Counted from the stretch's first letter, positions 5,670 to 52,270 are shown. The stretch is DNA of 64,000 nt from Trichosphaerium sp. ATCC 40318 (GCA_038496445.1 JALMLS010000287.1:124001-188000), one strand, 5' to 3'. Made by a program: numbers and translations. Notes: generated by a model from the sequence alone, not told the origin.

Positions 5670-6375
5670 AATGATGTACTCCCTCAATTGGCCTTGTCTA
5701 TGCCAACACTTGATCTCCTTATATGTTACCACGCATAATTACTCTGCTGTCTCAAGTTGACAATTGTCATACCAAACCTTTACTCTTCCAATTTACCATT
5801 GACATAATTACACTGTAGTTCCAATTGGCCATTGTCATGCCAACGCTTGTACTCTCCTTCTATTTTGCCATTCACATAAGTACACTGAGCTCTTAATTGC
5901 CCAATTCTGTACCAACACTTGTACTCGCCTTCTATTTTGCCATTCATATAATTACACTGCTCTCTTAATTGCCCATTTCTGTACCAACACTTGTACTCGC
6001 CTTCTTTTTTGCCATTCACATAGTTAAAATGCTCGTCCATTTGGCCATTGTCATACCACGACTTGTACTCTCCTTCTGTTTTACCATTCACATAATTAAA
6101 CTGCTCTCCCAATTGACCATTGTTATGCCAATGCTTAATCTCTCCTTCTCTCTCACCATTCATGTAACTGCATTGTACTAGCAGTTGGCCATTGTTGTAC
6201 CAACGCTTACTCTCTCCTTCTCTCACACCATTCATAAAATTACACTGCACTTGTAATTGCCCATTGTTATGCCAGTACTTGAACTCTCCTTCTCGGGTAC
6301 CATGTACATAATTTTTGTGAGAATACAAGTGTTTGTTACTATACCAACATTTCAGTTCTCCATGCCTTTTGCCAT
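5670..6375 (-). repeat. 72-bp tandem coding repeat array (about 8 intact units plus degenerate units beyond the stop codon)
   Basis: Units such as TTGTACTCGCCTTCTATTTTGCCATTCA recur at 72-nt spacing on the + strand. Degenerate units continue at 5670-5780 (..VWYDNCQL.., KEIKCWHRQGQLRE). Confidence 0.9.
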
Positions 6376-6668
6376 GTAAGAAGTATGCTTCTTTCTTTGC
6401 TATTAGCCTGAGGCTAGTGCCAATAAGTTTATACGTCCATTTACCATGTTTCTTAAACTCAAAGTCAAACCTTGAAGTAGTTGCTGTATGTTTCGATAGT
6501 ATGGACCACTTTTTATACACCTCATAGTCTAAATCGGTGATAATGAGATGTAATTCAACTGGAATGTTTAAAATATGGCAATGTTCGTCCTTCACAATTC
6601 TTAGCTATAAATGGAACGTCAGATAACCGTAGATAAAGAAAAAGCTTCACCTTTCGTTTAATCGCCAT
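5780..6668 (-). CDS. F-box-like + YwqK/MORN-variant repeat protein (family member 1)
   Basis: ATG at 6668 with one 46-nt intron (6605-6650) gives MAIKRKLRIVKDEHCHILNIPVELHLII (F-box-like), followed by about 8 24-aa repeats GKxEGEYKxWYxNGQLxxQCNYxN. Confidence 0.85.
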
Positions 6669-6768
6669 AATCTACAAGAACGCTTTTAAAAGTCTATACA
6701 CGCCGACAGTTTTAGACACCAATTAATAGTGTAGCAGCTTTCGCAAAAACGCAAGATCTGTGTTGACT

Positions 6769-6890
6769 ATGCTTGACATTTCTGAGCTAATTGTAAGAAT
6801 AGACAAACCATTCAAAAACTGTGGACATTGATGGCAAAAGGGATAGTAAATGCACGGAGTAGTATGAAGATGGAAACAAAAATGAGGCAT
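6769..6890 (+). pseudogene. Relic of F-box/YwqK-repeat gene
   Basis: Frames give MLDISELIVRIDKPFK and LWTL (collapsed F-box leader) and DIDGKRDSKCTE*YEDGNK (repeat with TGG>TAG). Confidence 0.55.
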
Positions 6891-7069
6891 ATCAAAAAAT
6901 CTTTTATTTTTACTCGTCATCAATTCTTGACATTTCTTTGAAGGTACTGTCGGCCCAACAAGGACTTGGGAATAAGTGCAACATTGAAATAAGAGATACC
7001 TTAAGAGTGTATGCAATTTTACTAAAACAAAAAAGATGTATAGTAATCACATTATGTTATTTGTTTTAT

Positions 7070-8729
7070 TTACAAACTGTTTGGATCAGTAAGTTGTTTT
7101 AATCGTAAAGATACCAAATAATCATTCAATGAATCTGTATCGGGCTCCTCAGGTATTTTCCATTCCCTTAAAACCAAAAAATATTAAAAAAAGTATGAAG
7201 AGGATGCCTTTAGTTAAACCAGAAGTTGTGAGCTGAAGGTCTTCGTGAAAGAAAAACAAAAAATCCTTCGAGGATAAAAAAAGTGTGTACGTTTCTTTTA
7301 TTTCCTTCATTAGTGCCTCTGCTCTTTCTACAATAACTTTATGATCAGTCCCTTTCCTATGACGTATCTCCATTAATTCTGTTCGCTCTTCGCCCTAAAC
7401 AGAAATCAGAAAAGAATCGGAAAAAAACAAGATATTCTTGAATCAAAATGATCAATTTTTAAAGCTTATTAAACGCGTATACTACATACTTCTGGGATAT
7501 AAATAAGTGGCTCTTCACCTCTTATAATCCTCTTGACTTCAAATAGTAGTCGCACTATGTGGTATATCCTCTTACCAACCATTTGATTTGTTGCATTATG
7601 TTTTCTGATTTGCTTTGTAATGTAACTTAAGATTGCATCAACAGTCCTCTTGTTCATGAACTAAACAAACAATAATGTAAGTACTAATCAGACAAAGTCG
7701 AACACATTGGCTCGTATTTAGATTCAAAAAATTAAGGGTTTCAAATATGAACAGAACAGATTGCTATAAAAAAAAGGTGCTTGCATACCGTCATTCGCAG
7801 TGCCTTAAGATTTCTCCAGCTCTCTGTTTCAAATAAATTCTTATCAGAAAACAACATCTCTATCAAGAAGGGATTGCCTATTGTTCAAAATTAATATGCA
7901 TAACTCTTTGGGTTACATCACAAAAACTTGAAAAAACAAACTTCACCAAACATTTAATGCTCACTGATGCTTTATAACTGCAAGTACAAAGCAAGCTCTT
8001 TTAGGATTGTAAAAGATTAGGTAAGGTAACGATTTAAAGGACAATATTGCAACTATAGTGCATCACGTGATAACCAATTGCTATACACGTGCAGTTATAA
8101 AATTTATTTCTTTTATTGTACCTTTTATAAGTAGCCTAATTGCGGTAGCAACTTCGTATAGAGTAATATCATCAGCTCCTTCTGGAGCATTTGGGAGTGT
8201 TGATATGGTGGGAGCATTGCACGTAAGAGATACAACTTCTTTTGTGTCAACTGGGAAAAGAACGTTAGAGATCGCTAAACGTAGCGAAAGGGGTTGTAAA
8301 GACATTAAAAATATGTTGTTTGGAAATATTGAGCATCAACTCTGTTTTATCGCTTTTTGGGTTTAAAGAAGATCGCCAGACTCTAGGTGTATTTTTTGGG
8401 CGATTTTGATGCGTCGTACCAACGTAGCAGCCTAAATAATCGATATCGCTTGTAGGTACGGTAAGATTGTATGCTTTGCTTCCAGTCGCCATACCTGTAA
8501 CTTATTAGATGGTTACAAACGTTTTTATTAACGTACAGAACAACATTGTTCCGTTGATGCCTTTTTCGCGTAAATACGCAGTACCAACGTCTTTGAGCTT
8601 TCCCGGGTCCATATTAGTGACAAATCGGCGTTTTATTTTTGTTTTAACAACTCTTGGAGTAAAGCTTGATTGTGTCACCGAGCTGTAACTACTGACAACG
8701 CTGCACCGCCTTTTGAGCAAAGATAGCAT
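7070..8729 (-). CDS. DNA-polymerase-beta-superfamily nucleotidyltransferase (PF10127/RlaP/YcgL-like) with a predicted mitochondrial-type leader
   Basis: GSKAYNLTVPTSDIDYLG catalytic motif; DITLYEV..LIKGNPFLIEMLFS; KRIYHIVRLL; C-terminal IPEEPDTDSLNDYLVSLR. The N-terminus is Arg/Ser/Lys-rich and acid-free. Confidence 0.8.
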
Positions 8730-9024
8730 AACTTTAAGCTCTCACTGTGTTACTTAAATACGTTGTTTCTTTGAATACGACGGAAGTTTCAAAGGTTTTT
8801 CAGTTCTACACGCCATCCGCGATTACTCGGATACGAGAAATTGTATACAACTGTTACCTGACCTTAGGTTGCTATGACCAATAGCTCATCTAACAAGCGA
8901 GAAGTTTACTTCAGTACTGTCAACAGGTGACATCAAGGCACTGCCGTCCAGTTTTTGAAAATTGTTATCATATAAAACACCAACAAAGCTATTTATTGCA
9001 ATACACGGATCAATTGGACATTGC

Positions 9025-11721
9025 CTATTCATCTGTTTCTGGTTTCTCGTGTACAAGGACGACAGGAACTTGAACTTTCTGTAAAGGGAGTAAGGTACAA
9101 ACCAAAAGTAAGAAAAAAATTTCATAAATTATTTGGTTTCCAGACGTTACCTGTTTGTGTTTATGCAAGAGTGCTGTCTTACCACTCTTGAATTCTAAGT
9201 AGTGATCTACAGAGATATACTTGGTTCCCATAGATTTGAGAACAGATTGTTGACGATATTTAGTAGGCAAAGAGACATTGAATTCCTTCTTCCACCTATG
9301 TCAAAAACATTAGTTCAAAAGGTAACTTTGTGAAACAAAAAACTCGTACTCAGAGTTAGGTCCACAAACATCTTTTATGATTCTTGCTGCAAGAACACGT
9401 GTGTTTACAACAGGTCTTAATCCATTTGAGCGTATAGTTGTTTTCTCAAACAACCTAATCTTCAACTTTCCAAGAATATGATGAGACAAGTTCTCTGTCC
9501 TCTAAAGTTTTTTGTCAATAGTAACGCTCGTTCGTTTGTGGACATACCAATTTCAAGCTGATAGGATTACCAAGTTGGTGTATCCATGCACCAATCGTAA
9601 TATGAAGTGAGACATGGTGGTTTTGAGATACCTAACAAAACATAAGCGATATCAGTTTTCAATAAACAGAAATACAGAACAAAGACTAACCTTGTAGATA
9701 TGATCTTGGTCTTTTGGAGAAATCTTCGTGTCCAAAGGCGTGTGAAGTTGTATAGGAAGAGCTATAAAGGGTACCAAATGAGCAACAAACACCAAAAAAA
9801 AGAAACAACGTACTATAACTGTGCTTCTTAAGACCATCAACACTCGCTGTAATTACATATCGGATGAAACCAAACTTCGAAGCATAGCCAGGTGGTGTTG
9901 CTGCAGGTACAGAAATCTTAAATTTCCAAGAGTAGCTTCCGGCAGCCCAAGTCTAATGAAAAACCAGTTAATACACAAAGTTCTTTAAAACAAAAAAAGT
10001 GACATACCTTTGTGGAGTCTGTCATGTTTTTCTCCAATACAGTTGCTTTTTCGATTATTTTACGATGCTCCCTTACAGGTACACGTTCTCCATCAATAAA
10101 AGTGATAAATGAAACATGTTCTTGTCCAAGGAACCTTACAGAAATACCCTTAGTGTAGGATATTGGTTTACCAACAAGCAAACGGACTTTTCCTTGAATA
10201 ACAGTTCCAGCTTTGATTACATCTGAGTTCAACTTGACAGAAAGTCTTGGTTGAAGTCTAATATCGTGTTTAGTTGATGAAAATCATGTCAATTATAAAC
10301 TCATACCTGACACGTGATTTGTCATGTTTCATCAATGGTAAATGTCCCTTGGGAATCCATGTAACAGAAATATGGATTTCACCAGCTGAAGAGTCTTTTT
10401 CTGACATTGCAAGCCAGATAGATCGTTTCTCATTTGGTGGTAGACTACGTACATTAAGTGTACGTGAATACAATTTACTTCCAGCCTCAGTCTATTTCGT
10501 AAAAAAATAAGAATCAAAGTCTTGAATAAAAAATTGTAAACTCACCTGAAGCTCAAAAGCAATACGGTCTGTTCCCTTGTCAGCGATTTGAACATGGAAC
10601 ATTTGGTAAAAGTTTGGTGTTGTTCCGCCCGAAACATCAGATACACCTGTACCATAATCAGGCTTTCCTTTAATAGAAACCTAGACAAAATAAATAAGTT
10701 AAACAACATATCTTTCTTCAAAACTGTCAAATGACGTACAGCAACTTTGTGTTTGGCATCAGGAAAGTTCTTTCCATCCATAACCAATATTTCTAGTAAC
10801 CCTAAACAGCACTATAAGTCAAAACAACGCCAAAAGAAAAAGCCAATGAAAAAGACAAAAAAAAAAAAAGAACTGTGAAGTAACCCATACCATTAAGAGC
10901 GTCTTTCTCAGTGCTAGAACCAGAACTAGCCTTAGCTTTCTTGCTCTTCTTCTTCTTAGGTACAGAAGATTTTTTAACTTCAGTGACAACTTTTGGAGGT
11001 TCCACTGCTGGTTTATCTGCTCTTGGGGTCTTTTCAGATTCGTTATCGAGGAAAAAATCCCAGTCCTCTGGCCTGTTGTATTCCTGGTCGGTACTTGCAG
11101 GCTACAAGACGATATCGTTAGCCAGGAGAATTAATAAAAGATGCTCGTTTATTTTATCAATAAATATTTTAATTGAGCGCGTGGTCTGTTTTACGTACAA
11201 TAGCGAACTGAGGAGATAGGAAAGGATTGTTTGGTTGACCAACAACTTCTGCTTCCGAAATGTTAAGCAAATCGCGTCCACCTGTAGGTGCTGGTGCTGC
11301 ACTTGGCATCTGTAAAAAATAACGTTATCTCTAATTAAAGATAGAGTGTAACATAACGTACGTTTTCTCCAATGCCCAGAATACTACCACCGCGCACTAA
11401 TAGTGGTTTTTGAGCTGCTGGCGCAGCTGTTGTGCTTGGTGTAGTATTTGTTTGAAATTCAGCAACTGTTTGTACGTCCACAGGCATCAATAGGGGCGGT
11501 TGAGACTATACAAAGGCGCATATAAGTACCGAAAACGGACAATTTTGAAAATTATAACGTACACCATCATCGTTAACGAAAGGCTCTACTGCAGCGCTAG
11601 AGAGTGGAGGGTGAAAGTAGTCCTCTGTGCCGTCTTTTAATTGACCGGAAGGCGTCTTGTAAACGTCAAAAGGTTCCCAAGCAAGTTGGCCAATATCTGC
11701 GAAAGGATCTAACGAAGCCAT
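9025..11721 (-). CDS. C2-domain plus arrestin-fold protein (multi-exon)
   Basis: C2-like LEILVMDGKNFPD..RSIWLAMSEKDSSAGEIHISVTW; arrestin N-domain AGTVIQGKVRLLVGKPI..KGISVRFLGQEHVSF, FKISVPAATPPGYASKFGFIRYVITASVD; C-domain YISVDHYLEF..VQVPVVL. Confidence 0.75.
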
Positions 11722-12015
11722 TACGTTTGAAATTCCTGAATTTGACAAAAAAAGACAAAATAATCACGACTTAGCTACAAAACTTCAGAATATTTATTTG
11801 CTATTCCGTTGTTTTGGGAGAGCTTGAAGGAATCTGTAATGACTTAACATGAGGACGAAAGAAGTTCGTATCTAAATACATTCCTTACAATAACTTTGTC
11901 TCCGTTTGTCATTTGTCCTTTGTCCTTTGTTTCCAATCGAGTTCGATTCTGTTATTATAAATCAAGATGGAATGGATTGAACTTTGGAGCATGTATCACG
12001 AGACTCTCTTTTTTG

Positions 12016-13275
12016 TCATACTCTAACTTTATATATTTTTGTTCTACAGCAAACATACAATATACTTTTCCAGTAATGCATTCCAGTTACTACACCTATT
12101 TTGGGCACTGTAGTGACTACAAACTTTGAAAGGATTTGAAATTTGTCTTTTGAAACTATTAGTTTGTAAATACCAGCCTTTTCAGTTACTCCTCTACCGC
12201 CAAGATAAATAGCACCAATTCTATCTGTTGCTAATCCATATATTTTCGCATGGTGTGTATATATCACTCTAGGTTCGCCATCAACTAGGCAACAAAGCTG
12301 GTCCGAAACAGTAAAGTACCTGTAAAACAATGTTAGTTTGTTTTTTCTTAAAACATTCTTAGTACACTGTTTTTGTTGTTGAGTCAAATATAATTCTCTG
12401 AAGTACACCAGAGAAACTAGAATCCACCTTGGCAATAATAGAAATCTTACCACTTGGTGACACCTTAAGAATCTTATTTGAAGGTGCATTACCAACAAGA
12501 ATATTTCCCGAATCGTCGATTGCAACCCCACTAGGTATGTAGAGAGTTTTGTCTTGCTCCAGAGGAGTACCAAGAATCGTTTTTATTTCTGAAAGGTCAC
12601 TACTAATCTCTCTTACTATACGATGCATTTTGACTGTTAATATAATACGACCATCTGCAGAAACAGCACAACAATCAGGAAAAGCAAAAGCTAAACAAAC
12701 AGTTAAGTTCTAACTATTCAGTCACGTGCTAGGATATGACATGTACCTGCACGTTTAAGGGAACCATCTTCGATGCTTCCTTTCCTACGTTCATTATTGA
12801 GTAAACGCTTTGATGACCCATCAACAAGCCATAAACTCTCGTCCATCTGATCTACTACAACCACCTAAACAATCCTTCTTTTAGTTGCACGTGCGTGATA
12901 TTTTTATATCTAACCTGTCCTGTTGATAAAACTGCACAGCTAGAAGCCCATTTGAATTTACAAGGAAGTTGTTTAACAACACAGTAGCGGTTTTCGTCCT
13001 ATTGAAGAAAAAACGGTTGATTAGCTTTGTTTTGTTTTCCCTACGCGTGCGTGGGCATTCAACACCCTTTGGTGAACTTATTGCGTACTCTGCAAGGTGG
13101 AACGATCTTATGTATGGCATTTCCAGCTGACGACGTAATACCAAAGGCAGCAATGTCGTACAAGCACAATTTCGATAATATTTCTACCATTATCTCTGGA
13201 GGGAAGCTGTCAAAGCTTAAACTGTAGTGAAATGTTAGTAACAATACGACTGGAATTTTGATACCCTGACGACAT
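12016..13275 (-). CDS. F-box + NHL-like beta-propeller protein
   Basis: F-box SFDSFPPEIMVEILSKLCLYDI; NHL-like FAFPDCCAVSADGRI, LYIPSGVAIDDSGNILVGNAPSNKILKVSPSGKIS and IYGLATDRIGAIYLG. Confidence 0.75.
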
Positions 13276-13409
13276 GTTTATAGAGTTTTGGCACTAAATA
13301 ACGAGCGGTTTTGCTTCAATGAATACAAACCAAGGCTATCTTGCTTAAAGCCACTTTAAAACCGACAATCTTGTATTCTCATGGCTAACGGCTGGCCGCT
13401 CAGTGTAAA

Positions 13410-15613
13410 ATGGCTGCTGTAGCGGTTGTGCGTACCAATCAAAGTAATATCTCCAAAAATTCAGTTCTTGTCAGCTTATAAACAACTACTAGAGGCTTTG
13501 ATCTCGCACAGGCGACATTTCGAAAAAGCAGCTCAAAAGTTAGGTGTTTATTCCCTAGACGGCTGGTATACCGTAAGTGGTAATGACATAGCGACAGCAG
13601 TAGGAGTTAGCATTTTATCAGCAGCGTATGAGCGTAGTATTATCACCCTTATCTTATGTGCTCCAGGTACAATCGATCGGTATATAGAGCTGTAAATACC
13701 GTATTTCCTGAGTTTAAATGGTCAGCTACCAAATTCAGGTTGAATTAGCTACTATACGTCGTCTTACTTATTTTCTACGCGCAGAAATGCCCCACACGAC
13801 CTTGAAAACAAGACTCCTAATTACAGAAATGAACTCGATTGTGCGGGTCAAAAACTCAATGTAAAGCATTTAGATCAGTGGTACTCTATATCTAGTAGAG
13901 ATTTAAAGGATATTGGCTTTAGTTCCATACTCACATCGTAAGCATTGTTGATTTTAAGAAAATGGATTTCTAACGTCCAAACAAGACATGAAGGATCTCT
14001 TCTAAAGGCGCTATGCGCTAACTACAGCAATGTAGAATGGCTACCACATCTTTTCAAGTACGTAGAGCAACGTAACTTTATTAACTTTCGCTGACTTTCT
14101 TCCTTTTACACAGTGTTGTACCACCAGGTCACTGGAAGAATCTAGACAATCAACAAGATAGATTTAATGATATAGCAGAGAAGCTTGAATATAAGTGTCT
14201 TGATGATTGGTACACAGTAAGCCGAAAAGATCTATGTAATCTTGGAGGAGCTAGTATCTTAACTCACCAGTAAGAAAAAAAAAGGAAACCAAGTTGAAAT
14301 CTAACATCTTTCAAAAGGTACAATCATTCTATCCTGGAGGCTCTCAAAAGCATTTATCCGCATAACAATTGGGAAGCTAATCAATTTCAGTACGCAACCG
14401 CACTTATCATGGTAGTACTAACTACTTTCCAAGGCATCTTACATGGATGGAACAAGACCGACTAGAACTTGATGTTTACGGAGAAAAGCTCAACATCAAG
14501 TGTTTACAAGACTGGATTGATATAGTATCACGCTCTAGTAGAGTTAATGGAAGTGTACTTTCCATGGCTTCAAGGTAAACTATTTATTAGGTTAGAGATA
14601 AAGCATTAACGGGTCTTTAAGGCACAGGGGAATGTCACGAATGTTGCGAGTGTTGTACCAACGTTATGATTGGTGTTTTAAATCTACTTCAATGTATCAC
14701 TCTCCTAGAGGATACTGGAATAATAAATCTGTTCGTATAAGTTTCTTGAAGAGAGCTGCAAGCTTATTGGCAATAAGAAAACCAGAGGATTGGTAAGTCA
14801 ACAGTTTTCCGCGAAACTGTTTTATGCACCAATAAACGGTCTCCTAACTCTATTCAGGTATGATGTGTCAAGAGAACAACTCCAAAATATGGGCGGTTCA
14901 GGAATACTCAAGCATTTTCCAAGCTCCTTAACGTTGATTGAGCCGTTTTTTAAGTGGGACTTGACGAAGTTTAAGGATTCCAAAAAAGCGAACCAAAGGT
15001 ACGATATTGTTAACATTGTTTTTAACCTCACTCTAGGTTATTGCTTCAATATGTTCGTAAAGTATTCCCAGGACATAGAATACTATCAGAACATTTAATA
15101 GGAATGGCTAGTGCCACAAATGGACCACTTTCTGTCGATATTTTTGTTCCCGACTTCAACTTGGCCTTTGAATACCAAGGTTCGAAAAATAAACCTACCA
15201 TGATTCTTTGGTACTTTTTAACTATGGTAATAGGAGAACAACATTATAATGATGGTGTATTCATGGAAGGCATTAATACTTCTATAAGAGGAATAAGAGA
15301 TGCAGAAAAACTTCAACAATGTGCTGACATTGGTAATCCAAATATAAACAAAATTGTTTACTCATCTTTAATTTACTAATATTCACAAGGTGTGACATTG
15401 ATAGCAGTTCCATACTGGTGGAAGAAATCCATGGCAAGTTTGACGTCACTTATTAAAGATGCTACAGTCCATAGATCAAAGGAAGTTAGCAGACGCTGCA
15501 ACGATTATAACTGGCTACCATACTGCTCTGATCGTTTAGGCAAGAATATGGTTTTGTACTGTATTTATTTACTACTTTGCAGGTTTAATGGCGCCAAAGC
15601 AAGCTTTGGCTAA
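13410..15613 (+). CDS. Tandem ~70-80 aa repeat protein with a C-terminal PD-(D/E)XK-like (Vsr/DUF559/RAP-like) nuclease domain
   Basis: Five repeats with consensus KLxxxxLDDWYxVSxxDLxxxGGxSILxxYxxSxxxALxxxYPxxxWxxxxF..PxGYW; C-terminal SVDIFVPDFNLAFEYQGEQHY..RDAEKLQQCADIGVTLIAVPYWW. Start and final exon are uncertain. Confidence 0.8.
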
Positions 15614-27924: not shown

Positions 27925-28150
27925 TGAACGCAAACAAGACTCAGCACTGTTTGTTTACCTTTAGACATCCAGCACATGATTTTAAATGCATGAAAATGGA
28001 CAACTTCAGGTTTGAAGCATGTTTATTGAAGGCAACCCACGATGAAGAGAAAATGTGGTACGAAAATAGGCACTTCTCAGCCAGTGTGTTTATGTTAATG
28101 CTAAACTACATGGTGTACAAAGAATGGAATGGACAACTTAAATGTCACCA
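27925..28150 (+). pseudogene. Relic of F-box/YwqK-repeat gene
   Basis: Switching frames gives CLPLDIQHMILNA*, HENGQLQV*, EEKMWYENRH, QCVYVNAKLHGVQ and WNGQLK. Confidence 0.7.
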
Positions 28151-30210: not shown

Positions 30211-30420
30211 GTATTCTTTGATTAGCCTCTGAGTTTACTTTTCTGGTGATTATGTATTGTTTGTATAATTCTATTTGGTGTATTAGTAAACGCCATGGTG
30301 AGTATAGAAGTTGGTATGAAGATGGCAAACTGCAGAACAATACGTTTATAAAGATGGACGAAGACATGGAGAGTATAAGTCTTGGCATTGTAGAGATGTT
30401 TTTCAAAGGCAATATCTTTG
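30211..30420 (+). pseudogene. Relic of F-box/YwqK-repeat gene
   Basis: IWCISKRHGEYRSWYEDGKLQ, then a frameshift to YVYKDGRRHGEYKSWHC; preceded by a degenerate FD*PL leader. Confidence 0.7.
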
Positions 30421-30449
30421 CCAAAAAAAAAAATAGTGTTCATTTTACA

Positions 30450-38698: not shown

Positions 38699-38937
38699 TG
38701 TATATTTTTTGTTGGGGGTGTGTAATTGTAGTACTTTAGAAGTTTTATGTAAAAAAAAAGTGAATAAATATTTTAACGTTAAGGGTCCTTAAGGTAACGT
38801 CAGATCGTCAGAAACTTTCCAGTTTTTTGTGAGTGACATGGTATAGATATTTACTATGGTTGGTTTTATTTACAAATTTGCCCAATGCCTGTAAAAATCT
38901 TGGGACGCTTTTTTTTCTGGTTTCTTTTTTTTTTTTG

Positions 38938-40619: not shown

Positions 40620-42684
40620 CGACTAACCTGTTGATTAATTTCATGATTTTTATCATGCACCCCTTTCTTTAGCAGAATACGCTTGTCTAATCAAATCATA
40701 TAACTCCTTCAATAAAGATGTATCTAAAATAGAGTATTAGAGGAAAAAATAAGGAAAAGAACAACGGTTTAAAAAGAATAACCACGTGCCAACATGTGTA
40801 TGCTTTAAAATCCGTTCAGCTGCATGCAAGTTTTCTAATGTGCTATTCGTATTCTCTAAATACCAATCTAATTTTGCTAGAGTAAAGTATTGTAATCCCA
40901 ATAATGGCCAGTTATCATCGTATACGCCTACATTCATTTTTTGTTAAAAAGCGTCAAACTTTTGTTTCAAAAACTCAAAAAGAATCACCGTTTCTCCGGC
41001 TGTCAAAATATGTACCACGTACGTTTATAAAAAGGTAAAGATTTACGGCATTCTATACTTGCTTTTTCGTATTTACCCAATGAAATGTTTACTTGCATTA
41101 GTTGATCATGTACTTCTTTTCGCAAGTAATGTGATTGGCATAATGTCTTTTCAACCAGAGGTACAACTTTTTTTGATAAAATAGTTTGAGCTTCTTCGAT
41201 ATCTATGTGTTGTTGTTAAACATTAATTATGTTACTTACAATGTAATATAAATATACAGGAAACATTTAACGTACTACCAAAGGTTTTTGCTTTTTTAGC
41301 TTCTTGTAAACCAGTCTTGATGTTTTTCATGTTTTCAATGACAACTGATTTTTCTAGCTTTTTAAAAGCAATAAGACTTTCATCTTCTGTAGCCTAAACG
41401 TATTTGTAAATTTGGCCACAAGACTAATAAAACCTACTGAACATTTACTGCAGGTACAAGCGAAGAAAAAATTTGTTTGAAGCGCGAACTGGCGCTCTCC
41501 AGTGGATTGTCCAACCTAACACTAAATTAATAAGTGTAAAAACAAAGTCAAAGTTTTACTTCAACATAGTTGATTGTTATCTCCTCTCCTTTTTTAATAG
41601 TCCTGATGGCTCTCAACATAGCTTTATTACCTTCAAACATGCACACAGTATTAGGTGAGCACCTATTGTTCTGTTGTTAAGCTTTTCGGAAAAAAAAACA
41701 AGTTGGAAATTTTAATTAACGCACGAGTGGTTGAGCATTGCCAGTGGGGGAAAAACACCAATACCTACTATACGCATTTCGGGATCAACTATATTCAAGT
41801 TGTTACAACGGAACTAATAACGTAAACACAAAGAAGCAATCAACTTTCCTTTCACTGAATAACATGACAAGTCATTTGACACATTGCACTAGAAAAAAAA
41901 ACCAGTTTACCTTGCAATACAATTCAACAATATCTTGTATACGAACTTCATCATTTGTAGGTGCAATCTTTTTCACTAGAAGAGCCATCTTTGCGAATAT
42001 ATCTAGCTGTTCAGAAGGGAAATCATCCTTGTCTTTTCAGCGTTAAAGAAAAAACAAGCAATTACTGAGCAATTTCAAAAAAAAACTACAAATAGTGGAT
42101 TTATACGTACGAGATAACAACGTTTCTAGCTGGCTCTTTTGCTATGAAGTGTCAATATTATTTAGTTTTTACGCGCATACAGTGGCAAGGAGGCTTAGTA
42201 CACGCGCCATAAGCACAATAGATGGTGTAGGCTTCTCTGGGGCTATCTATATTTGATGAGGTGTATATTCTGCACTTATCTTACCGCTGCGATGCGTTTG
42301 CACTCTGTTTTATGGCCATCATTCCAATCTGCTTTCTAAGCTTTACTGAGTTTATTTTATTGCACCTGGCGCGTACTTGACAAGTAACAGAGCAGTATCG
42401 AGCGTATTTACATCTGACGCAAACTTTTAGCTTAGCGAAAGGTTTGAAGCATTTTGAACAATAAGAACGTAGTTGATGCGAGCTGAGAACGGCGGCTAGA
42501 GCATTAGTTTTAAAAACGCAGCTACCTTTTAACAAATAAGTAATTAACAGTATGAATGAGCCTTACCAGGCTTTAGATCCTTGTTTGTGACGACTGTGCG
42601 CCCTTTTATTTCATTATCGACTAAACTGAGTGAATACGCATTGAGTTCGTCTAGGATAGATTTCGAAGCGAGTTGGGATGCCAT
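40620..42684 (-). CDS. SMYD-family SET/MYND lysine methyltransferase
   Basis: KGRTVVTNKDLKPG; MYND CSKCF..CVRCKYARYCSVTCQ; GIGVFPPLAMLNHSCSPN; IKKGEEITINY; post-SET FACTC. The 3' end is uncertain and may extend to about 40325. Confidence 0.92.
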
Positions 42685-42956
42685 AATAGACTGACACTTC
42701 GAGAATGACTGTACTTAATCTGTCAGAACTAAGGCAGTACATTCCATGTGAAATTCAACTACATTTGTACTTACAATGTTACTAGATTAAATAAAATAAG
42801 GTCAACCATCTAGCCTACAGTAACACTAAAATACTGTCAAGCAAGACCTCTTCCTTTTATATTTTTACATAAACTTTACTGTCTTTGTTGTCAAGTATTT
42901 TATTATCAATTTCAAACGTATTACTTCTATTTTTTTTTTGCGATTGATAGATAAGC

Positions 42957-45900
42957 TTACTTAAACCAAACGAATATATCTGGGTAATCATCAATATCTT
43001 CACCAGTCTTAACATCCTCGGCAGTAACCTCAACATTAAAGTAGCGTTGATTCTCCTTTAGTGTTATCTTAGCAATCTCAGGAACCAGCTCAGACAACCT
43101 TATTGCAATAAGCAACATAAAAAAAACAAAGAAAGAAAAAAAATAATCAATGCTTACTTTCTTGGTAGTCTAGCTGCACCCTTCCTGCCAAAGCATGTGT
43201 AAATCAATGCAGTACCTACACCAACCATTTGGGCATCCATTTGATATTTTTTCTAAAGCAAGTGTTAAACGTCAAACTCAATAAAAACCAAGTATTCAAA
43301 AAAATAAAAAACATACCTTGAGATAATTAAGGAACTGTTTCAAGGTTATATCACCTTGCTTGATATCAATGCGATCCCATAAGGTATAATGAGAGTCACG
43401 GAACTTGAGCTTCTCAGGAGCCAAAGGTTCAGATTGTTGGAAGACAGGTAATGCCAAATTGACAAAAGAGTTTCTGTATTGAAAGATTGTTTTATCTCCA
43501 TGGAATAACTAAAAGAACCCTTCGTTAACACATCATTTCTTATACTGAGACTTACTTTATAGAACTCTAAGCATACTAAACCAGTAACCAAAGCTGTAGT
43601 AGTAATCATAGCTGGCATGATACGACCAGCAATAAGCTTGGATTGCAATTGTGTTACCTTTTTTTAACAAAACAGTTAGAAACTAACTTGAAGCTTGGGA
43701 GGTTATAAAGTGCATGATGCACGTAAAATTATACGTACAGGTTTGATACCATAAGCAATTGCACGAAGATTAGAGGCAGCATGAATAAAATCGATGTGGA
43801 AGTTCGTGTCATCATCTTTTTCGAAATCGACTGGGTTAGTTCTGTACGTTGTTGAAGCTGGGTCAGGGAGCTCTTTCTCAATTCTAGCGATTTGTACATC
43901 ATCGTCATCTGCAGCTTCTCTATATAGAGATTAAACGACGCTATTGCAACGCAAAAATAAAGAGTGTTGTACAAACTAGCATTGTAGTACACTCAAAAAG
44001 GGTTGACTTGGTGGTTTTTGCTATCTTTCAACGTACACTACTTTTTCAGTGACACTCTCGTCAGTTTCAATCTTTACACCAACTTTTGGTTTCCATGCAG
44101 GAACAGATACAGAAGCAGCAGCCTTTGCAATACTAGCAGCTTGAGACTCAAAGTCTGAAGGCTTAAACTCAGAGGAAATGATGTTTAGCGTGTAAGCACG
44201 CAAGAAAGCTGCTGATACAACAAACTGAGCATGTATAGGATCATTAGGATCGAATTCTATTGCCTTTGGTGGTCTCTTTGAACCAGACCAGAAAGGTGCT
44301 AAGAAATTATTAAGTAAAATGAATAAACACGTGAAAATACACGTGACACGTGACAGGGCAAAAAAAGTCCAAATATGTTTGTGATGTACGTACCACCATG
44401 TGAGTCAACGTAATCCAATGGGAAATTATACAAGAGTTGTTTATGGTTCCAGTTGAATCTTTTTTGGAATTCGAGTCTAGCCCAAGCGATACAATCTTGG
44501 AACTCTAATTGACGCTCCATTAAGCAATCTTTGATGATTTTCAAGGTAGGTAACTTGAGATTTGGGCTCACAGTCTTTAACAAAAAGTCAAAATTTGGTT
44601 GGTTAAAAAAAAGGCAACTCACAGAAAGGTATCCAGGTTGCTCCAAGTAAGAGTTTGTGATGTCTGGATTCTTTACGAAGTGTCCTTCAAAGCAATCCTC
44701 CCTGCAAAAAAGTTAACTACTCACTCCTTTCCGTAAAGAGTGCAAATTTTCGAGTGGAAAAAAAAGTACCTAGCCCATTGCAAGCAATGTTCAATGTTGT
44801 TTGGGAAGGAGTGTAATAAGCAAATAGGTGTCTCCTTTGCTGGTGGATCAGTCGAAGATCCGTACGACTCTGTGAGATATGGTACAATAACTTGTACATT
44901 ACCCTTGGATCCAAGTGTACCGGAATCGACAAGTGGCTTTCTACAGGGTGAATAAGTATTTTGAAACATAAAAATAGGTTTTCTACGATTATTGCGTACC
45001 TGAAGAATACACATCGCCTGTCAATATAGAGACGAGCTTGTACGTTATCTACAGCATTGGCAACACCGTCGAGTTTCTCCCAAAACTCATCATGAAAGAC
45101 ATTTTCAGTCGAAGGTGCAACCTTTGTAGCAAGCGCTTCAATGTTCAATTCAGGGTTCATCTTCTTAACAGCAGCACAAGCTGTATTCGATTTCAATTTC
45201 TAGCACATGTATAAGCACACACAACCGATTAAAAAATAATCATTCTAAGCTTACTGTTACATCCCAACTGCGGTACAAGAACTGTCTGTTCAAGTTGGAA
45301 ATTTCAATAGTGTCCATATCAGTAACTGTTACTTTTCCTTTCGGACCTTGAGCCTTGTTAGTAACCACTACAACATAATACCAAGTATGATAGTGAACGC
45401 ACCACAACCAATACCCATCATTGCAAAGTTCTTAAGCATCTCACAACCAATTGCACCAGCACCAACTACAAAGTAGTTCAAGTTTAAGATTTTTTGGTTA
45501 TACTCATTTCCGAAAACAGCTATTTGACCGTCGTAGCGTGTGTTACGCTAGAAATATCAGTAACGGTAAATGCGTGTTTAAACATACTGGTTTAGCGTCT
45601 TCCTCAGTGATATCTTCAGTAGGGAGGCACTCGAGGTTTTCAGAGAACAAAAATTGGTTGATAGGTGTAAACTTATTTGTAGTAGCTTTGAGAACTTCTT
45701 GGGCTACAATACCACCAATAGATGCGGCCATTGGGTTCAAAGAACCTGCAGCAGTTTTTGCAAGATCCATGACAACCTTTGACAAAGACCTTTTAGTCTC
45801 ACCATCAGCCTAAACAATCACATTAGTAACCATGCGTTGCACCAAAAATAGTTGAAGGAAAAGAATACTGTATAAACCACGCACCACTGGAGATTCAGTA

Positions 45901-47520
45901 AAGTCCTTGTCAGTATAACGCTCATCTTCTGGGAGAGCTTCATTCATTTTTTTTACTCTAGCTAGAATATCTTCAGCATCGCTCTACTTCTAGTTAATAA
46001 AACGCATCACTTCCATAGTATGGTACATAGTTTTGTTGTATAAAAAAAAAACTAACCTTGTTGTGTGGAGTAGGTAAGCGACCATTTTCTTGTCTGAAAG
46101 CAAGAAGACTCTGTAAAAACATAAAGTAAAGTGTGGATCTATTGAACTTGGACCAATCTCCAATTTGAAGCTTTTCCATGGACAATTTCTTTCCCAAGAA
46201 ACTAGCCAATGAATCCTAAATAAATACATCAATATACGTACTCTTGTACTACAAGTAAAACGTACGAAAGAGGCTTCAACAGGTTTCTTTACTTGCACCA
46301 TATATCCACCTTTGGAATACTCGGAGAATGCGGATGTATCACCAATAACTAATTGTGACGGTCCTTTTACAGTAACTTTAAATTCTTTGCCGTTGATTTC
46401 TTCCATTCCTTCGACTTCTGTGATACGGATGTAATCACCATCTTCAAGATCATGTCTAACACCTTCAACAATGGTAATAATAGCCTCTTTTTCCTAAAAC
46501 GCATAGAGGTTAGAAGTAGATCATATTAGTGAACAAAACGTTGATTTTTCAATGAAAGAAAAGAGCCAAGACAGTGACGTGTACCTTTGTAATGTGAGAC
46601 AAAAATGACGTTTTTGGTCTCTCACCATCCTTGTCTTTGATTATATGGGCGTCTTTACCCATATCAACAAAAGTATAGGCAAATAAACCAAGTGTATCAG
46701 CAGTAATGAATTTAACATTGCTTTCACGACACATAGTGTTGTATTGAACCAAGCTGTCAAATGAGCTATTGTTAGTGAAGATAACAACCTGTAATATGTT
46801 AGTGGGGCATTTTGGAACAATTACAAGGGATAACAAGCGTTTAAACAATTTTGTTATAAAAGCAGAGTCTTTACTAGCAATAAAACGCTGAAAATAACAC
46901 TCTACGCACCGAGAATTTCTCTACAAACTCCTTATTAACCTCTCCGTCGAATATGTCGAGTTTTACGCGTTCGTTTAATTCACGCAATTTGAGTAGAACT
47001 GATTGCGCTCTGTTTTTGCCAACGTCTGCCTCAGACAAGTAAAACTAAACAAACGTTAATAAAACATTGTTTTTAATACGTTGAAATGTCATCATACGTT
47101 GGTGCTCAAGTCTGACATCTCTACAGGCTCGAGATCCTGAATTGTAAGCGATGATACGCCCATCAGTACAAGGTTCTTTGCTACGCCCCAAAGTTAATAT
47201 AAATATCCTAAAACGCGTTGGCTAATATCTCCGCGTACCTATTTCCATACCAAGGCCCCTTAAACCGACTAAGAAGATCCGTGAGCGTTCAAGCTGTTTT
47301 AGCGTCTCTACGCCATCCTCGCCAAGAGCGTGGAGTAGTCTGCTTGCTCTAGCCTCCCATGCCTTTTGACTTTCAACTTCCTGCAATGCCTGGTGTTAGT
47401 ATATAAATGCTCTACGCTTATGCGTACTTCTACGGACATGTTATCTATGTTGTCTGTCACTGTTTCAGTGGGGTGACTTATCTTTTGTCTTTTTTTTGGC
47501 GGCTCTTGAGGGCTTTGCAT
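42957..47520 (-). CDS. UBA1: Ubiquitin-activating enzyme E1
   Basis: [18 protein letters not shown]; RHDLEDGD; [13 protein letters not shown]; [17 protein letters not shown]; [13 protein letters not shown]; catalytic PICLLHSFP; [11 protein letters not shown]; [25 protein letters not shown]. Confidence 0.97.
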
Positions 47521-47745
47521 AAAGAGGCAGTTTCAAACCACCAGTGCTCACTTGATACTAAAGCTAAGAAATTTCAAGACCGTTCTAGGACCGTTACAGT
47601 CTTTGCTGACTGTTCAGTTTTCATTGTTGGTGTCTTTTGGTGCCTAGAGACTTCAAATACGCGCGGTTTTTTAAATCGATGATTCTGTTGGCGCTACAAG
47701 TTGTAATTGTCATTGGATGGCTCGTCAGTAGCGGCGCTGTGCGTA

Positions 47746-49033
47746 ATGAACGCGTTAGCATCGCTTACAGACTCAAATAGTTGTTATTTTATTTTGGAGC
47801 TCATTATTTTGTACGGTTTTCGTTGGGAGCGGTACTATGGTCTTTACTTCAAGGTTTAATGTACGGTCCATTCCCGCCATCAAGTTGGTAACTGAAATAG
47901 TCCAAAATCTGAAAGTACTGTGATATCGTTTATTTGGTGGGCAGGGCTTATTCCAGTATCCGCACTTTGCGCGTATTTTTGTCCAGTACCAGTAGAACTC
48001 ATTTTCTCGTGGATAATTGGCTCTATCTGGCCTGTATTGCTCATAATACAAGGGTTTTGGGCTGTCACTGCCTCTGTTACACTGTCATCCTTTTTGAAGG
48101 CTCACTACGAGGATTCGCACCCAGGCTTAGTACAAGTACGCATACGCGCTCATCTAACCTATCCTCTTGTGAAATTCCACAAAACTCAAAGAATCCAATT
48201 CTTATCTTACCTAGACAGTACTAGTCGCCATACCAGCTGTGTGCTACCCACTGGCAATTGTAGTATTTTATCTTTCTTATTGTCATCGCAATATGGACGT
48301 TACGCTGTCGAGGTACGTTGTGGGGTACACACGCTTCTAATAATGCATTAGCTATGTTGCTGTTGTGTTGACAGTTCTCCTTTTAACGCCGCTTGTTGCG
48401 TTTCAAACAGGCTCTGCACTTATTTCGGATATTGCCCTAGTTACTTTGTACATGGCATATCTCTCTAGAGCAACTGTGGTGGAAGCTGGCCCTGTAGACC
48501 CAGAGGATTTGTACGCCTTTCGAAACCAGTTTTTTATTTTCTTTCATGTCTCTGAGAGCCTCCTTTAGTACTTTCTTCTCGATACCTTTCCTGTCAGTTG
48601 ACTTTGTATTATCTACGATAATGACGCTTTTATCTATCATATCCCTACCATATTTGGTAGATTATGATGAAGACGAAGTAACATTTGGATATGTAGATAG
48701 TGAAAAGGTACAGAGTTAACACTATTTATTTTATTGTTCACTCGTTTATAACACCTTATCTAGAAAGTTTTTGGTGAAGAGAGTCGCTCACTTTGGCGTG
48801 TTCTATTTTCTGCAGGTGAGTCTAGCATTTGATAGTGTTACACTGCAGTGTTGCTGTATATTAACTTATTTTTTACAGGGAGTATCATGATTTACACACG
48901 TGCCTCATTGACTGCATCCGGCAATATGGCAACTCAGACTTTTCACTGGAGGGCCATACAATCTATAGTAACTATGGTTGTATATGGCATGTATATTACA
49001 CGTGATGCAGCAGAACATACCAAACAATACTAA
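47746..49033 (+). CDS. Multi-pass membrane protein, possibly ICE2-like ER protein
   Basis: Spliced hydrophobic exons, e.g. GSALISDIALVTLYMAYL, GSIMIYTRA and C-terminal WRAIQSIVTMVVYGMYI. The ICE2 resemblance is from memory only. Confidence 0.5.
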
Positions 49034-49196
49034 GATTAGCATTGTACCAAGAATAAAAACATGAAAAGTGCACAAAACGCAATTATTTTGGATCCATTGA
49101 AAGGCAGCAACAAACATTCGTTGGTGTCTATACCAACAGTTAAAACCATTACTTTATTGTGAAGATGTTACAACGTAAGCGAACACAAAGAACAGT

Positions 49197-50132
49197 TTAT
49201 TTAAGTTTAACACCATCCTTAAAGATTGCCTCAGCAATCACGTTATATTGTTTATCCCATTCCTTGTACTCTCCATCAATTTTACCATTTGTAAATTTAC
49301 AACATTTAATGAGGATTCTATTGCCTTCACTATCGCTACACCATTCTTTTAATACCCCATGGATCTTACCATTCATATATTGCTTTTGATGTATTAAACC
49401 AGCATTGTACTTGAACTTTGTGTTTTCTTGTAATATTCCGTTTTTGTAAATACCTTCCTCAGTAATCATGCTTCGTAAATTCCAGAGTTTATACGGCCCA
49501 TCTAGTTTGCCATTTTTGTATGTTTTTTCATACCGCTTTACATAGGATTCCAACAAGCGCGATTTTCCGTCCAAAAAACCATTTTTGTAATTGTCAACTT
49601 TTTGAAATTCTATCCTGCCATTTGCATAGTTCTTTCTCGTCTCCTTCGCTGTACCATCAAGAAGGCCATTGACAAACTTACATTGATATGTTATCCATCC
49701 ATCTCGGTGGTAATGAACATAGTCACCATGGAGTTTACCGTCTTCATTGTAATTACATACAATCTTGACACCATGAGTGTCTTTATTTGTGTAATACACT
49801 TTGTTTTTTCCGAACTTTTTTCCTTCTTTGTAAGACAACTGCAAGCATAATCCCCAGTAATGAGTGGCATGGAAAATAATGTTGACATTTCCATCAAGCT
49901 TGCCATGTTTGTATTGGGCTGTAACATTGTAACCGGCAGTTGCAATCCAATCTTTGTTTCTGCGTGTAGAACAGTAGACCTGAATTTTAAACTTACCATG
50001 CTTTTGCAGTTTATTATCAAATCTAGATGTTGTCGCTGATTTCAAACAAAGCTCAGGCCATAGCTTTTTTACTTCAACATCTGTATCAGAAAAGAGCATA
50101 TGAACCTCAACAGGGAGATCCAAGAGCGTCAT
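49197..50132 (-). CDS. F-box-like + YwqK/MORN-variant repeat protein (family member 2)
   Basis: Intronless. MTLLDLPVEVHMLF..LWPEL..ATTSRFD..KHGK leader, then repeats YKHGKLDG, DGKLHGDYVHYHRDG, YKNGKLDGPYKLW, FTNGKIDGEYKEW. Confidence 0.88.
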   Translation of the reverse strand: MTLLDLPVEVHMLFSDTDVEVKKLWPELCLKSATTSRFDNKLQKHGKFKIQVYCSTRRNKDWIATAGYNVTAQYKHGKLDGNVNIIFHATHYWGLCLQLSYKEGKKFGKNKVYYTNKDTHGVKIVCNYNEDGKLHGDYVHYHRDGWITYQCKFVNGLLDGTAKETRKNYANGRIEFQKVDNYKNGFLDGKSRLLESYVKRYEKTYKNGKLDGPYKLWNLRSMITEEGIYKNGILQENTKFKYNAGLIHQKQYMNGKIHGVLKEWCSDSEGNRILIKCCKFTNGKIDGEYKEWDKQYNVIAEAIFKDGVKLK

Positions 50133-50177
50133 TTTACTAAAAAATCCTTTAGAGAACAAAGCCTACCTGCTTACTCA

Positions 50178-50993
50178 TCACGTGTACCTAACAGGTATAC
50201 AGTCTAGATCTACAACATCTTGTACTCTTACATATGGAAGTGGTATATAGCGTCCGGGACCTTCAAACAACCACTATCATAACGAAAAACTAATAAGTAA
50301 ATCGATACAAAGGTAAAATTAAACGCATTCAATCCTCACCTCATCTCCTTCTTTTCTGGAACACGAACCAATAGTAAAATCCTTCAAACATTGTAACTTA
50401 AGAGCCTTTCCTTTTTCTACAATTTGCAAGGGTGTAACGTCCACTTTAAGAACCTCTCCTTCGGACACAGTCAACGTTAATATTACTATAAATAGTTGTC
50501 ATGGTTTCAGACAGCCACGCACCTGGGTAGAGTGGAAAGGGGTCTTGTGAGTAGCGAACCTCTTCCTCACCTTTTCTTAGACAAAATGACCCAGACATTG
50601 ATTTCTTTAGTTGTGTTGGTGTAGGAATACGGGGAACGCAATTCAAGTCTCGGAATAGGTTCGCGTTTTCAACATTTCTAGTTAAGTAGCACACCTTTTC
50701 AAGCGCAACTTGAAAGTCCACTCTGTTTTGCGAATGATGTACTTTTATGATTTCTGTAACTACTGGGTTCTCAATGATGCAGTAGTGATCTTTGGGTATT
50801 TTAATCATTTGTTTAGGGCCACAAAGTAATTCGGTGTCCGCAGTTAACGTAATAGTCTTTGGTCCTATTTCTAGGCGTGGTATACGACTTTACAAGCGTT
50901 AGAGCTGTTTTTAGTAGTTGTCACGTACTAGCGTTTGTGTGCGACGAAAGCGTACTGAAATTCGGCTAGTATAACCTCCGTAAGCCCAGACAT
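50178..50993 (-). CDS. Truncated major vault protein-like gene (N-terminal vault repeats only)
   Basis: Three introns. Spliced: ..PRLEIGPKTITL..GPKQMIKIPKDHYCIIENPVV..GEEEVRYSQDPFPLYPGEVL..VTPLQIVEKGKALKLQCLKDF..EGDEWLFEGPGRYIP, then stop. Confidence 0.85.
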
Positions 50994-51242
50994 ACCTCAC
51001 ACAAAAACACAAAATTATGTTGGCTAACTTAAAAAGGTATTAAGTTGACAACGATTAATTGAAAGTCCAACTTTCAAAATGGAAAATATGCCACGGTTAA
51101 CGCTTTTGAGGTAACACAGTGTTGACGTTGGAAAACATAGCGTAGGTAACTAACTGAGAAGCTGTAACGAAGACTTTTATTAACCAAACATTCTCAACGT
51201 AGAGTGGCTGTCTGCAGTAACCACACGTGCGCTCGCTTCTTT

Positions 51243-52270
51243 TTACTCAACTCTTTCGCCAGAGTTGTATTGATAGTCAATAGATAAGACATGTTTACCA
51301 TCAATCTTCTTCCATACTCTCCATTGACCATGCTTCTTACCTTTTAAATAATGACCGTGAACTTTTGGTTTACCATCATTAAACCAAGCACGATAAGATC
51401 CATCAAACTTACCATTGTAGTAACTACATTCTCTTACAACTTGTGAAAACTTGAACATTTTCGAAACACCACTTAACTTCCCTTTAGCATAATTATGCTC
51501 CCACAATAATGATCCATTTCTTCTATATCCACTATGAACACCTTCTTTCATACCATTCGTAAAAACTCTATGTACCATAACAACACCATCTGCATTCCAT
51601 TTGAAATGCTCTCCTACTTTTTTCCCATTTTCGTAATTTCCTTGTACTAGAACACCCCTAGTCTCTATGTGATACCTTCTCATTGTACCATGCAATTTAC
51701 CATTAACAAATGTTGCTGTTAAGTTTGGACGATTATTATAGAAACGTTCTATATACTCACCATCCACGTGATCAGGAAATTTGCTTGTATTGTAGTGAAT
51801 CATTGTGCGTTTAATTAGACTATCAAGCATTCCTTTTCTGTTATTTTTTCTAAAGTAGCATTGAATGGGATGCCATTTTGCTCCAACACGAACATTAAAC
51901 TCACCAATAAGTGTCCATTATCAAAAGTACACTCCACTCTCTCTATGTTATAAGCGCGTGATTTTGAGCGCCTGTAATAACTTGAATGAAGTTCGCCATT
52001 TGCATACGAACACTTTAAAAGTACGTTGCCTTGTATGTCCCACGTTGTGTATGGTCCATTCAAAATATCGTTGTCAACGTGAAAAATGGTTTTAAGTGCC
52101 TTGGGGTTGTAATACCTCTCAAATTTACCCATTCGCTTCAAGTCTGTTGTGTATCTTGTTGAAATAGCTTCTTCCTTTGAGAGTATTGGCCAAATACAAC
52201 GTACGCGCGGATCGATGGCTGTTATCATATGTTTAAGCTCTCTGGGTAATGTAGCCAGCGACGCCGTCAT
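51243..52270 (-). pseudogene. F-box-like + YwqK/MORN-variant repeat gene (family member 3) with a single frameshift
   Basis: MTASLATLPRELKHMI..IWPILSK..STRY leader; repeats continue across a 1-nt shift at about 51905-51916 (FDNGH / LIGEFNV..QCYFRKNNRKG). Could be a sequencing error. Confidence 0.75.

Follow-up and report, generated by a model that had tools for sequence, protein, structure and literature searches.

Plants and nematodes possess hundreds of F-box genes that carry variable C-terminal domains. Such expansions were reportedly treated by Thomas in 2006, and roles in innate defence are said to have been proposed for them. Among giant viruses, Orpheovirus was reported to encode 55 MORN-repeat and 81 F-box proteins (PMC5786535). 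The draft genome of the marine amoeba Trichosphaerium sp. (70.87 Mb, guanine-cytosine (GC) content 37.69%) was described as holding 1,568-1,581 gene models "of giant virus origin", in which F-box and MORN domains were the most frequent, together with hundreds of candidates for bacterial lateral gene transfer; in the accompanying tables, models called "YwqK family antitoxin" find their best hits in bacteria and models called "MORN repeat protein" find theirs in viruses (Tekle et al., 2023; PMC10521059). In a stretch of 64,000 nucleotides (nt) from scaffold 00101 of this genome (positions 124001-188000), hereafter the window, we analysed loci that a first-pass annotation had read as F-box proteins with YwqK-type (MORN-variant) repeats. 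These loci are members of a single lineage-specific family in Trichosphaerium sp., several hundred genes strong, in which a short N-terminal leader precedes an array of MORN_2 repeats.

A leader profile search of the contigs (assembly of 70.3 Mb, 642 contigs, about 37% GC, eukaryote) gave 1,357 first-look candidates, of which the best 150 all scored at least 91 bits (E ≤ 2.4e-24), and a search with one window gene, g2, gave at least 237 matches. A second subfamily, with the leader LLDLPCEIQQYICTFNxExFTKFHTLSKRAAINTHFD, occupies other loci, at least 75 in number, and contributed at least 77 matches with E ≤ 1e-20, in open reading frames (ORFs) of up to 805 amino acids (aa). The strict motif TTRFDxxLxKHG occurred 141 times in the genome versus 0 times for a reversed control, and was present in its exact form in only 4-50% of sampled leaders. 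From these searches we estimate that there may be several hundred to about a thousand copies in total, a figure inflated by perhaps 10-15% by haplotigs remaining in the assembly. Identical matches on two or three contigs (C146/C239, C88/C430, C26/C300, C128/C182/C221) represent haplotigs or very recent segmental duplicates and inflate the copy counts. Leader-bearing ORFs ranged from 62 to 805 aa, with up to 17 repeats recognised in a single gene. ORFs of 122 aa or less held about 29 of the 150 best leader matches, and stops were found inside a minority of family matches, while most copies retained long open frames. Intact, truncated, decayed and very recent copies thus stand side by side and support a birth-and-death pattern, as had been proposed at first pass for a large family; the census of at least 150 strong leader matches agrees with the size. 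The same annotation described the copies as sitting singly, which does not hold for the genome, where they also form dense groups, such as those on C46 (184-257 kb) and C48 (69-251 kb). In the C46 group the leader occurs in eight or more places, of which four lie in ORFs of 526-627 aa, and inverted neighbours there have identical leaders and reshuffled arrays.

Within the window, a hidden Markov model (HMM) of the leader, built from paralogues, was compared with the six-frame translation and matched only three genes, g1, g2 and g3 (E 1e-26, 2e-23 and 6e-15). They are the full-length family genes, all three on the minus strand, and each has a leader of about 47 residues followed by 24-residue MORN_2 repeats. 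The features are as follows.

6651-6668, minus strand: g1 exon 1, 18 nt, ATG GCG ATT AAA CGA AAG (MAIKRK), then the donor GTGAAG; assigned by sequence reading and frame logic.
6605-6650, minus strand: g1 intron, 46 nt, GT-AG, of the form GT...CTGAC...TTTATAG.
5780-6604, minus strand: g1 exon 2, 274 codons, with the leader at 6437-6574, eight 24-residue MORN_2 repeats at 5798-6370, and the stop.
5679-5789, minus strand: two decayed, out-of-frame repeats just past the g1 stop (VWYDNCQLETAE.. / IKCWHRQGQLREY); matched by the double-repeat HMM at E 1.6e-3 and 2.2e-2.
49197-50132, minus strand: g2, intact, single exon, 311 aa; leader at 49986-50126; MORN-like repeats irregular and divergent.
51243-52270, minus strand: g3, two overlapping ORFs; leader at 52121-52252; exon 1 to 51894 or 51905, exon 2 to 51243.
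30288-30421, plus strand: relic of about two MORN_2 repeats (…KRHGEYRSWYEDGKLQNN…), without leader or ORF; double-repeat HMM E 7.5e-8 and 8e-6, single-repeat HMM E 3e-5.
28044-28148, plus strand: possible relic (…EEKMWYENRHF… / …YKEWNGQLKCH…), marginal; double-repeat HMM best E 1e-3, flanking pieces E 0.15.

The g1 splice is predicted from the sequence and the reading frame. The repeats of g1 matched Pfam MORN_2 (PF07661) at 6.3e-34, with 112 bits against a cut-off of 29.6. Those of g2 were recognised by the family double-repeat HMM (E 2e-20), Pfam yielding only SET7_N at 2.5e-4, and those of g3 by the same HMM (E 3e-27 in the 3' ORF and 1.7e-6 in the 5' ORF), with no domain found in a Pfam scan of this gene. 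The g3 frame is restored only via a weak GTTCGT donor, which would define a candidate 44-nt intron at 51850-51893, while use of the strong GTGAGT donor at 51904 leaves the frame broken. Because the better donor fails to restore the frame, g3 may be a pseudogene or a frameshifted copy, unless the weak donor is used. Six loci had been proposed at first pass. The three full-length genes and the relic at 30288-30421 stand, the piece at 28044-28148 is marginal and was not significant with the single-repeat HMM, and a supposed relic at 6769-6890 was rejected, as neither the single- nor the double-repeat HMM gave it any support. The decayed repeats at 5679-5789 had not been listed as a relic at first pass. 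The proposals that the full-length copies share a leader, and that they form one family with divergent YwqK/MORN_2 arrays, were both borne out. The placement of copies on both strands was not, as the intact ones are all on the minus strand and only two relics lie on the plus strand. Finally, family genes supply all but one of the five longest ORFs in the window, which fits the description of family genes with few introns amid intron-rich neighbours.

The repeat unit comprises 24 residues (xGEYKxW[YH]xNGQLxx[QH]CxYVN plus three residues), is most variable at positions 6, 9, 14, 15, 16 and 18, and is present in about 4 to more than 17 copies per array. Seven of ten divergent full-length members scored above the Pfam MORN_2 cut-off and two more below it; P0156, which belongs to the ten, showed just an MCM fragment in Pfam. 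An AlphaFold2 model of g1, which covers the 264 residues of exon 2 that begin with the leader and was computed with 68 sequences of the family, reached a predicted local distance difference test score (pLDDT) of 96.8 and a predicted template modelling score of 0.87, and shows helices at residues 6-15, 17-26 and 28-34 that run straight into about ten beta hairpins. With Foldseek, the solved folds nearest to this model were MORN1 (Toxoplasma, Trypanosoma, Plasmodium) and the junctophilins (7.5e-10 to 1e-5, template modelling (TM) scores 0.42-0.47), and the nearest predicted folds, from the ESM Atlas, were bacterial YwqK-family clusters (TM 0.77-0.81, residues 16-25 to 264). A giant-virus cluster of the same atlas (TM about 0.8, likewise only from residues 16-25 onwards) had MORN_2 in 72% of its members and F-box in 10%. 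The earlier statement that F-box and MORN architectures occur in giant viruses is supported. In BFVD there were 260 viral structural matches at E ≤ 1e-3 (best 3.5e-23), including the Pithovirus LCPAC302 "Antitoxin", Orpheovirus, Hyperionvirus, Harvfovirus and Dasosvirus. The modelled body of the protein is an elongated MORN_2 (YwqK-type) beta-hairpin array.

Close pairs of paralogues are mosaic. Their leaders are near-identical, with synonymous divergence (dS) of 0.03-0.2 and nonsynonymous divergence (dN) of about 0, and their arrays have dS of 0.5-1.3 and numerous indels, with an identity that ranges from 0 to 100% between blocks, the array dS being partly misregister of repeats, which inflates dS. 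This pattern would fit arrays reshaped through unequal recombination, or conversion at the 5' end. Alignment is unreliable where repeat arrays differ in length. The pairwise dN/dS ratio (ω) of arrays was 0.30-0.60 in six pairs and 0.07 in one near-identical pair, and in register-checked alignable blocks (388 codons) it was 0.33 for scaffold and 0.36 for variable positions. An ω of about 0.3-0.6 indicates purifying selection on the arrays, and the excess of nonsynonymous change by repeat position that the first-pass annotation had proposed as a check did not appear in this small sample.

Some family members are transcribed. MMETSP transcripts P0118 and P0163 gave 100% matches to loci on C39 and C87, and P0130 matched the C19 locus at 99-100% in two pieces (residues 1-49 and 50-247). 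Since P0130 maps in two pieces, it proves an intron of about 380 nt exactly before the leader in the C19 copy. P0194, another family member in the databases, stems from MMETSP0405. Expression was thus seen for these members. In about 32 of 56 sampled genes there was no in-frame start codon before the leader and an acceptor-like TAG stood 10-12 codons upstream; many of these TAG-bearing copies also had a CTAAC-like branch motif, as in g1. No A-rich tails or poly(A) tracts were found downstream of g1-g3. The flanks of 29 loci contained no common mobile element, and had DNA in common only where the loci were recent segmental duplicates or haplotigs, or where there were additional family copies. 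Retroposition, the earlier suggestion for how the copies spread, was rejected in view of the 5' intron marks in most copies, one of them transcript-proven, and the lack of A-rich tails after g1-g3; a transposon vehicle was rejected in view of the flanks. Because there are recent duplicate pairs, and because the 5' intron is established by one transcript and suggested in most copies, the evidence points to DNA-level duplication inside the genome.

The leader has the consensus LLxLPxELxLxIIDLDxxVYxKWPLLSKxxAxTTRFDxxLxKHGKW and contains a three-helix module of about 35 residues within its roughly 47 residues. Its LPxE motif is near-invariant, with P5 and E7 invariant in one leader alignment; after this motif come hydrophobic residues spaced much as in F-boxes, and an LSK(R) motif. 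In the full-length AlphaFold2 model its N-terminal position and its three-helix module of about 40 residues agree with the layout of an F-box. When 74 diverse leaders were compared by hhalign with 19 canonical F-boxes of the same genome, the match had a probability of 62.4% (E 7.3e-5, 43 of 47 columns); with only 31 leaders the probability was 12%. Column shuffles scored 8.9±2.1 (maximum 16.3), and none of 200 reached the 21.8 of the real comparison. Language-model neighbours, which we count as leads only, pointed the same way. For the leader alone they were giant-virus MORN_2 clusters in which 10-19% of members have an F-box, and once MORN clusters were removed the best named cluster was F-box, with scores of 0.80-0.89 in both cases.

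Several results weigh against an F-box and against the role that would follow from it. The Pfam F-box models (PF00646 / PF12937) found nothing in the three window leaders, gave a single F-box-like match (E 0.12) among 31 leaders, and matched none of ten divergent full-length members at E up to 1, whereas canonical F-boxes of the same genome reach 40-41 bits on PF12937. Nor did the leader profile match any F-box chain among PDB sequences, the only hit being a chance match to a defensin. The Trp of the VCKxW helix (helix 3) is absent from the leaders, which have LLSKxxA there; in the canonical F-boxes of the genome (19 aligned, consensus VCxxW), C27 and a later W40 are nearly invariant. With a leader-only AlphaFold2 model (pLDDT 77), Foldseek against the PDB was empty and VIA-align returned unspecific helical matches (Z ≤ 3.3). 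The 388 codons tested, a small sample biased towards conserved blocks, gave no sign of diversifying selection, and no transcript identical to g1-g3 was present among the database proteins found. A complex prediction of the leader with the amoeba's own Skp1, in which alignments were unused and the Skp1 fold was uncertain, scored 0.02 and weighs neither way.

On balance the leader is probably a strongly derived F-box. The earlier assignment thus keeps weak support from the LPxE motif, the three helices, the profile comparison and the language-model neighbours, against the Pfam result and the missing Trp. We lean towards homology of the leader with F-boxes, and would put its working as a Skp1-docking module at close to an even chance, perhaps a little under. 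The best explanation we can offer, which carries about half of our credence, is a family with a derived F-box leader and a MORN_2 array that acts as substrate receptors of Skp1-cullin-F-box (SCF) ubiquitin ligases. The leader would dock on Skp1, the repeat array would form the binding surface, and the proteins would be interchangeable SCF substrate receptors; as for the MORN_2 module, a single acquisition from a giant virus or a bacterium, or an exchange with these, probably preceded its expansion. This SCF-adaptor mechanism is the most likely reading, on weak homology signals. A defence role is pure inference. That the family should be a repertoire of hundreds of SCF adaptors, with YwqK/MORN_2 arrays diversified by repeat shuffling, that tags giant-virus or bacterial effectors for ubiquitination in the manner of innate immunity, and would be made from a module that the amoeba has in common with its viruses, we hold to be quite unlikely.

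The genome also possesses a very large repertoire of canonical F-boxes, the best 150 of 1,809 first-look candidates all lying above the PF12937 cut-off, and many of these matches sit in short exons. One group consists of F-box plus WD40-like genes of 410-440 aa (L047, L054, L056); others encode F-box proteins of 266-269 aa (L046, identical to L050, and L053) with an unrecognised C-terminal domain. There are at least four Skp1 loci (C137:79701-79844, C57:207719-207859, C88:17040-17308, which equals C430, and C51:262914-262982). The gene on C137 corresponds to MMETSP transcript P0061, its exon 2 being 100% identical. Other Skp1 proteins found are only 52-68% identical to the C137 protein over full length; because they are no closer than this, the amoeba appears as an isolated lineage with divergent Skp1 paralogues.

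Outside this genome, the leader profile found 54 matches among 1.84 billion (1.84e9) proteins, and every match examined had the same architecture. The sources of ten matches looked up were MMETSP, JGI or ENA, and none was NCBI. The divergent leader protein P0156 is encoded at 1586-2362 of an 11,225-bp ENA contig (ctg135517, L081) that looks eukaryotic, with fragmented Rpb6, Exo70 and MCM calls; because such a contig encodes a divergent leader, a relative of Trichosphaerium carrying the family exists in metagenomes. In IMG/VR, leader motifs gave 0 matches and a search with the g1 sequence gave no relative. A leader motif scan of 241 million metagenome records gave seven matches, none with MORN repeats, which we read as chance. 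Neither in IMG/VR nor among the ten profile matches looked up was the same full-length gene, leader included, seen in a viral genome. By these searches the complete leader appears all but confined to this amoeba and a few environmental relatives. External similarity is limited to the repeats (40-58% identity, 35-76% query coverage), and external MORN_2 proteins carry other N-termini, e.g. DnaJ or DUF5758. Two contigs that hold close relatives are giant-virus-like and have MORN_2 paralogue clusters. One giant-virus-like contig, L084 (ENA contig_70463, 285,797 bp), carries in 1-20543 at least 11 MORN_2 paralogues, all starting SIPVELQYAIAKCCGLDYTAVFNLL…. Their start IPVELQYAI resembles the first helix of the leader, with just 12 residues aligning, so that these N-termini are possibly a viral cousin of that helix only. 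As a bridge to F-boxes they were rejected, since hhalign against F-box gave a probability of 5% and Pfam found no F-box in them. Because the leader is common to the members and 5' intron marks occur in most copies, we infer one ancestral gene followed by expansion within the amoeba.

This single origin bears on a reading implied by the best-hit tables of the genome paper, namely that most copies arrived independently, by lateral transfer from numerous giant viruses and bacteria. It draws on the virus-origin counts and the YwqK/MORN model names of Tekle et al. (2023; PMC10521059), models that may include members of the family, on the 260 viral matches in BFVD, and on the 40-58% identity of the repeats to MORN_2 proteins on giant-virus-like contigs. 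We find it scarcely credible, however, as all examined members have a leader found almost nowhere else, external similarity ends at the repeats and the N-termini beyond them differ, many copies have 5' intron marks, and best-hit taxonomy is unreliable on consensus-like repeats. A largely non-functional expansion, in which decaying duplicates have no cellular role, is also very improbable. The relics and truncated copies in the window, the share of the best leaders in short ORFs, the stops in a minority of matches and a possibly frameshifted g3 would suit it, but most copies have long open frames, the leader is strongly conserved, ω of about 0.3-0.6 indicates purifying selection, and several members are transcribed.

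The alternative to which we give more room, unlikely as we consider it, holds that the leader is not an F-box but a family-specific helical cap, or an oligomerisation or localisation module, and that no ubiquitin ligases are involved. The proteins could then be MORN-type scaffolds, tethering membrane or cytoskeleton like MORN1 and junctophilin, or YwqK-like stoichiometric binders that neutralise incoming bacterial or viral toxins. The failure of the Pfam F-box models and the missing Trp speak for it; the hhalign signal may stem largely from the LPxE helix; no more than 12 residues align with viral N-termini; the helices adjoin the first hairpin without a linker; and the nearest solved folds are MORN1 and junctophilin, the nearest predicted ones bacterial YwqK-family proteins. 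Yet the profile-profile match covers the whole F-box profile (43 columns) and beats all 200 shuffles, the N-terminal position, length and three-helix layout match those of F-boxes, and giant-virus MORN_2 clusters with some F-box members exist. Moreover, no toxin domain (LXG/deaminase) was noticed beside the genes, a limited check among window ORFs of at least 140 aa that intron-split genes would escape.

Other features of the window lie near the family genes. Exons of a major vault protein gene stand between g2 and g3 (50319-50808, minus strand; Vault_2, 2.3e-14), and an exon of a ThiF-family (E1-like) enzyme is found at 44720-45196 (minus strand; 3.3e-12). The hexamer CACGTG occurs just upstream of the g2 start (about 50160-50175) and shortly downstream of the g2 and g3 stops (49000-49010 and 51215-51230).

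These results matter for how gene transfer in amoebae is counted. If the "YwqK family antitoxin" and "MORN repeat protein" models belong to this family, a sizeable share of the "unprecedented gene trafficking from giant viruses", and some of the "bacterial" candidates, may be one endogenous family. Because repeats of a consensus-like kind would draw best hits from viruses and bacteria, the number of transfers counted in amoebae needs a family-aware correction. The family also offers a tractable case in which arrays are remodelled (dS 0.5-1.3) while a short adaptor head stays near-identical (leader dS 0.03-0.2). The ubiquitin ligase (E3) receptor repertoires of plants and nematodes are comparable in number; if the leader is a working F-box, this family would be the first among such large repertoires to be built on MORN_2 arrays.

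Compared with described systems, the family is of a known general kind, an F-box-like head with a repeat array as found in giant viruses, plants and nematodes, with an unusual derived head and a MORN_2 body. It has the same MORN_2 hairpin array as the MORN/MORN_2 families of giant viruses (Nucleocytoviricota), such as Orpheovirus, Hyperionvirus, Harvfovirus, and Pithovirus-like and Marseillevirus-like metagenome-assembled genomes; those families, too, form multi-copy paralogue clusters, and some viral members have an N-terminal F-box. In contrast to them, the amoeba genes carry the 47-residue leader and, in many copies, 5' intron marks, and they number in the hundreds. Bacterial YwqK-family antitoxin/MORN_2 (PF07661) proteins, after which many database matches are named, agree with the amoeba proteins in repeat type and fold. 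The amoeba genes, however, are eukaryotic, have an added N-terminal helical leader, show about 25-55% identity over the repeats only, and, unlike YwqJK-type pairs, have no toxin partner or operon that was noticed among window ORFs of at least 140 aa. An elongated MORN beta-hairpin array is also present in MORN1 of Toxoplasma, Trypanosoma and Plasmodium and in the junctophilins, which differ from the family in their classical MORN repeats (PF02493), 14-20% identity, lack of a leader, and single-copy structural role.

With the canonical F-box proteins of its own genome (L047, L054, L056 and the 269-aa L046), the family shares the N-terminal LPxE(I/L)xxxI helix and a three-helix region of about 40 residues; canonical F-boxes have VCKxW...LW where the leader has LLSKxxAxTTRFD. 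The F-box expansions of plants and nematodes resemble it in joining a short N-terminal adaptor module to a variable binding domain, and in their hundreds of copies, both tandem and dispersed, with many pseudogenes and birth-and-death turnover. Unlike in those expansions, positive selection was not detected in the amoeba family in a small test, the putative F-box of the amoeba proteins is missed by curated models, and their binding domain would be a MORN_2 array.

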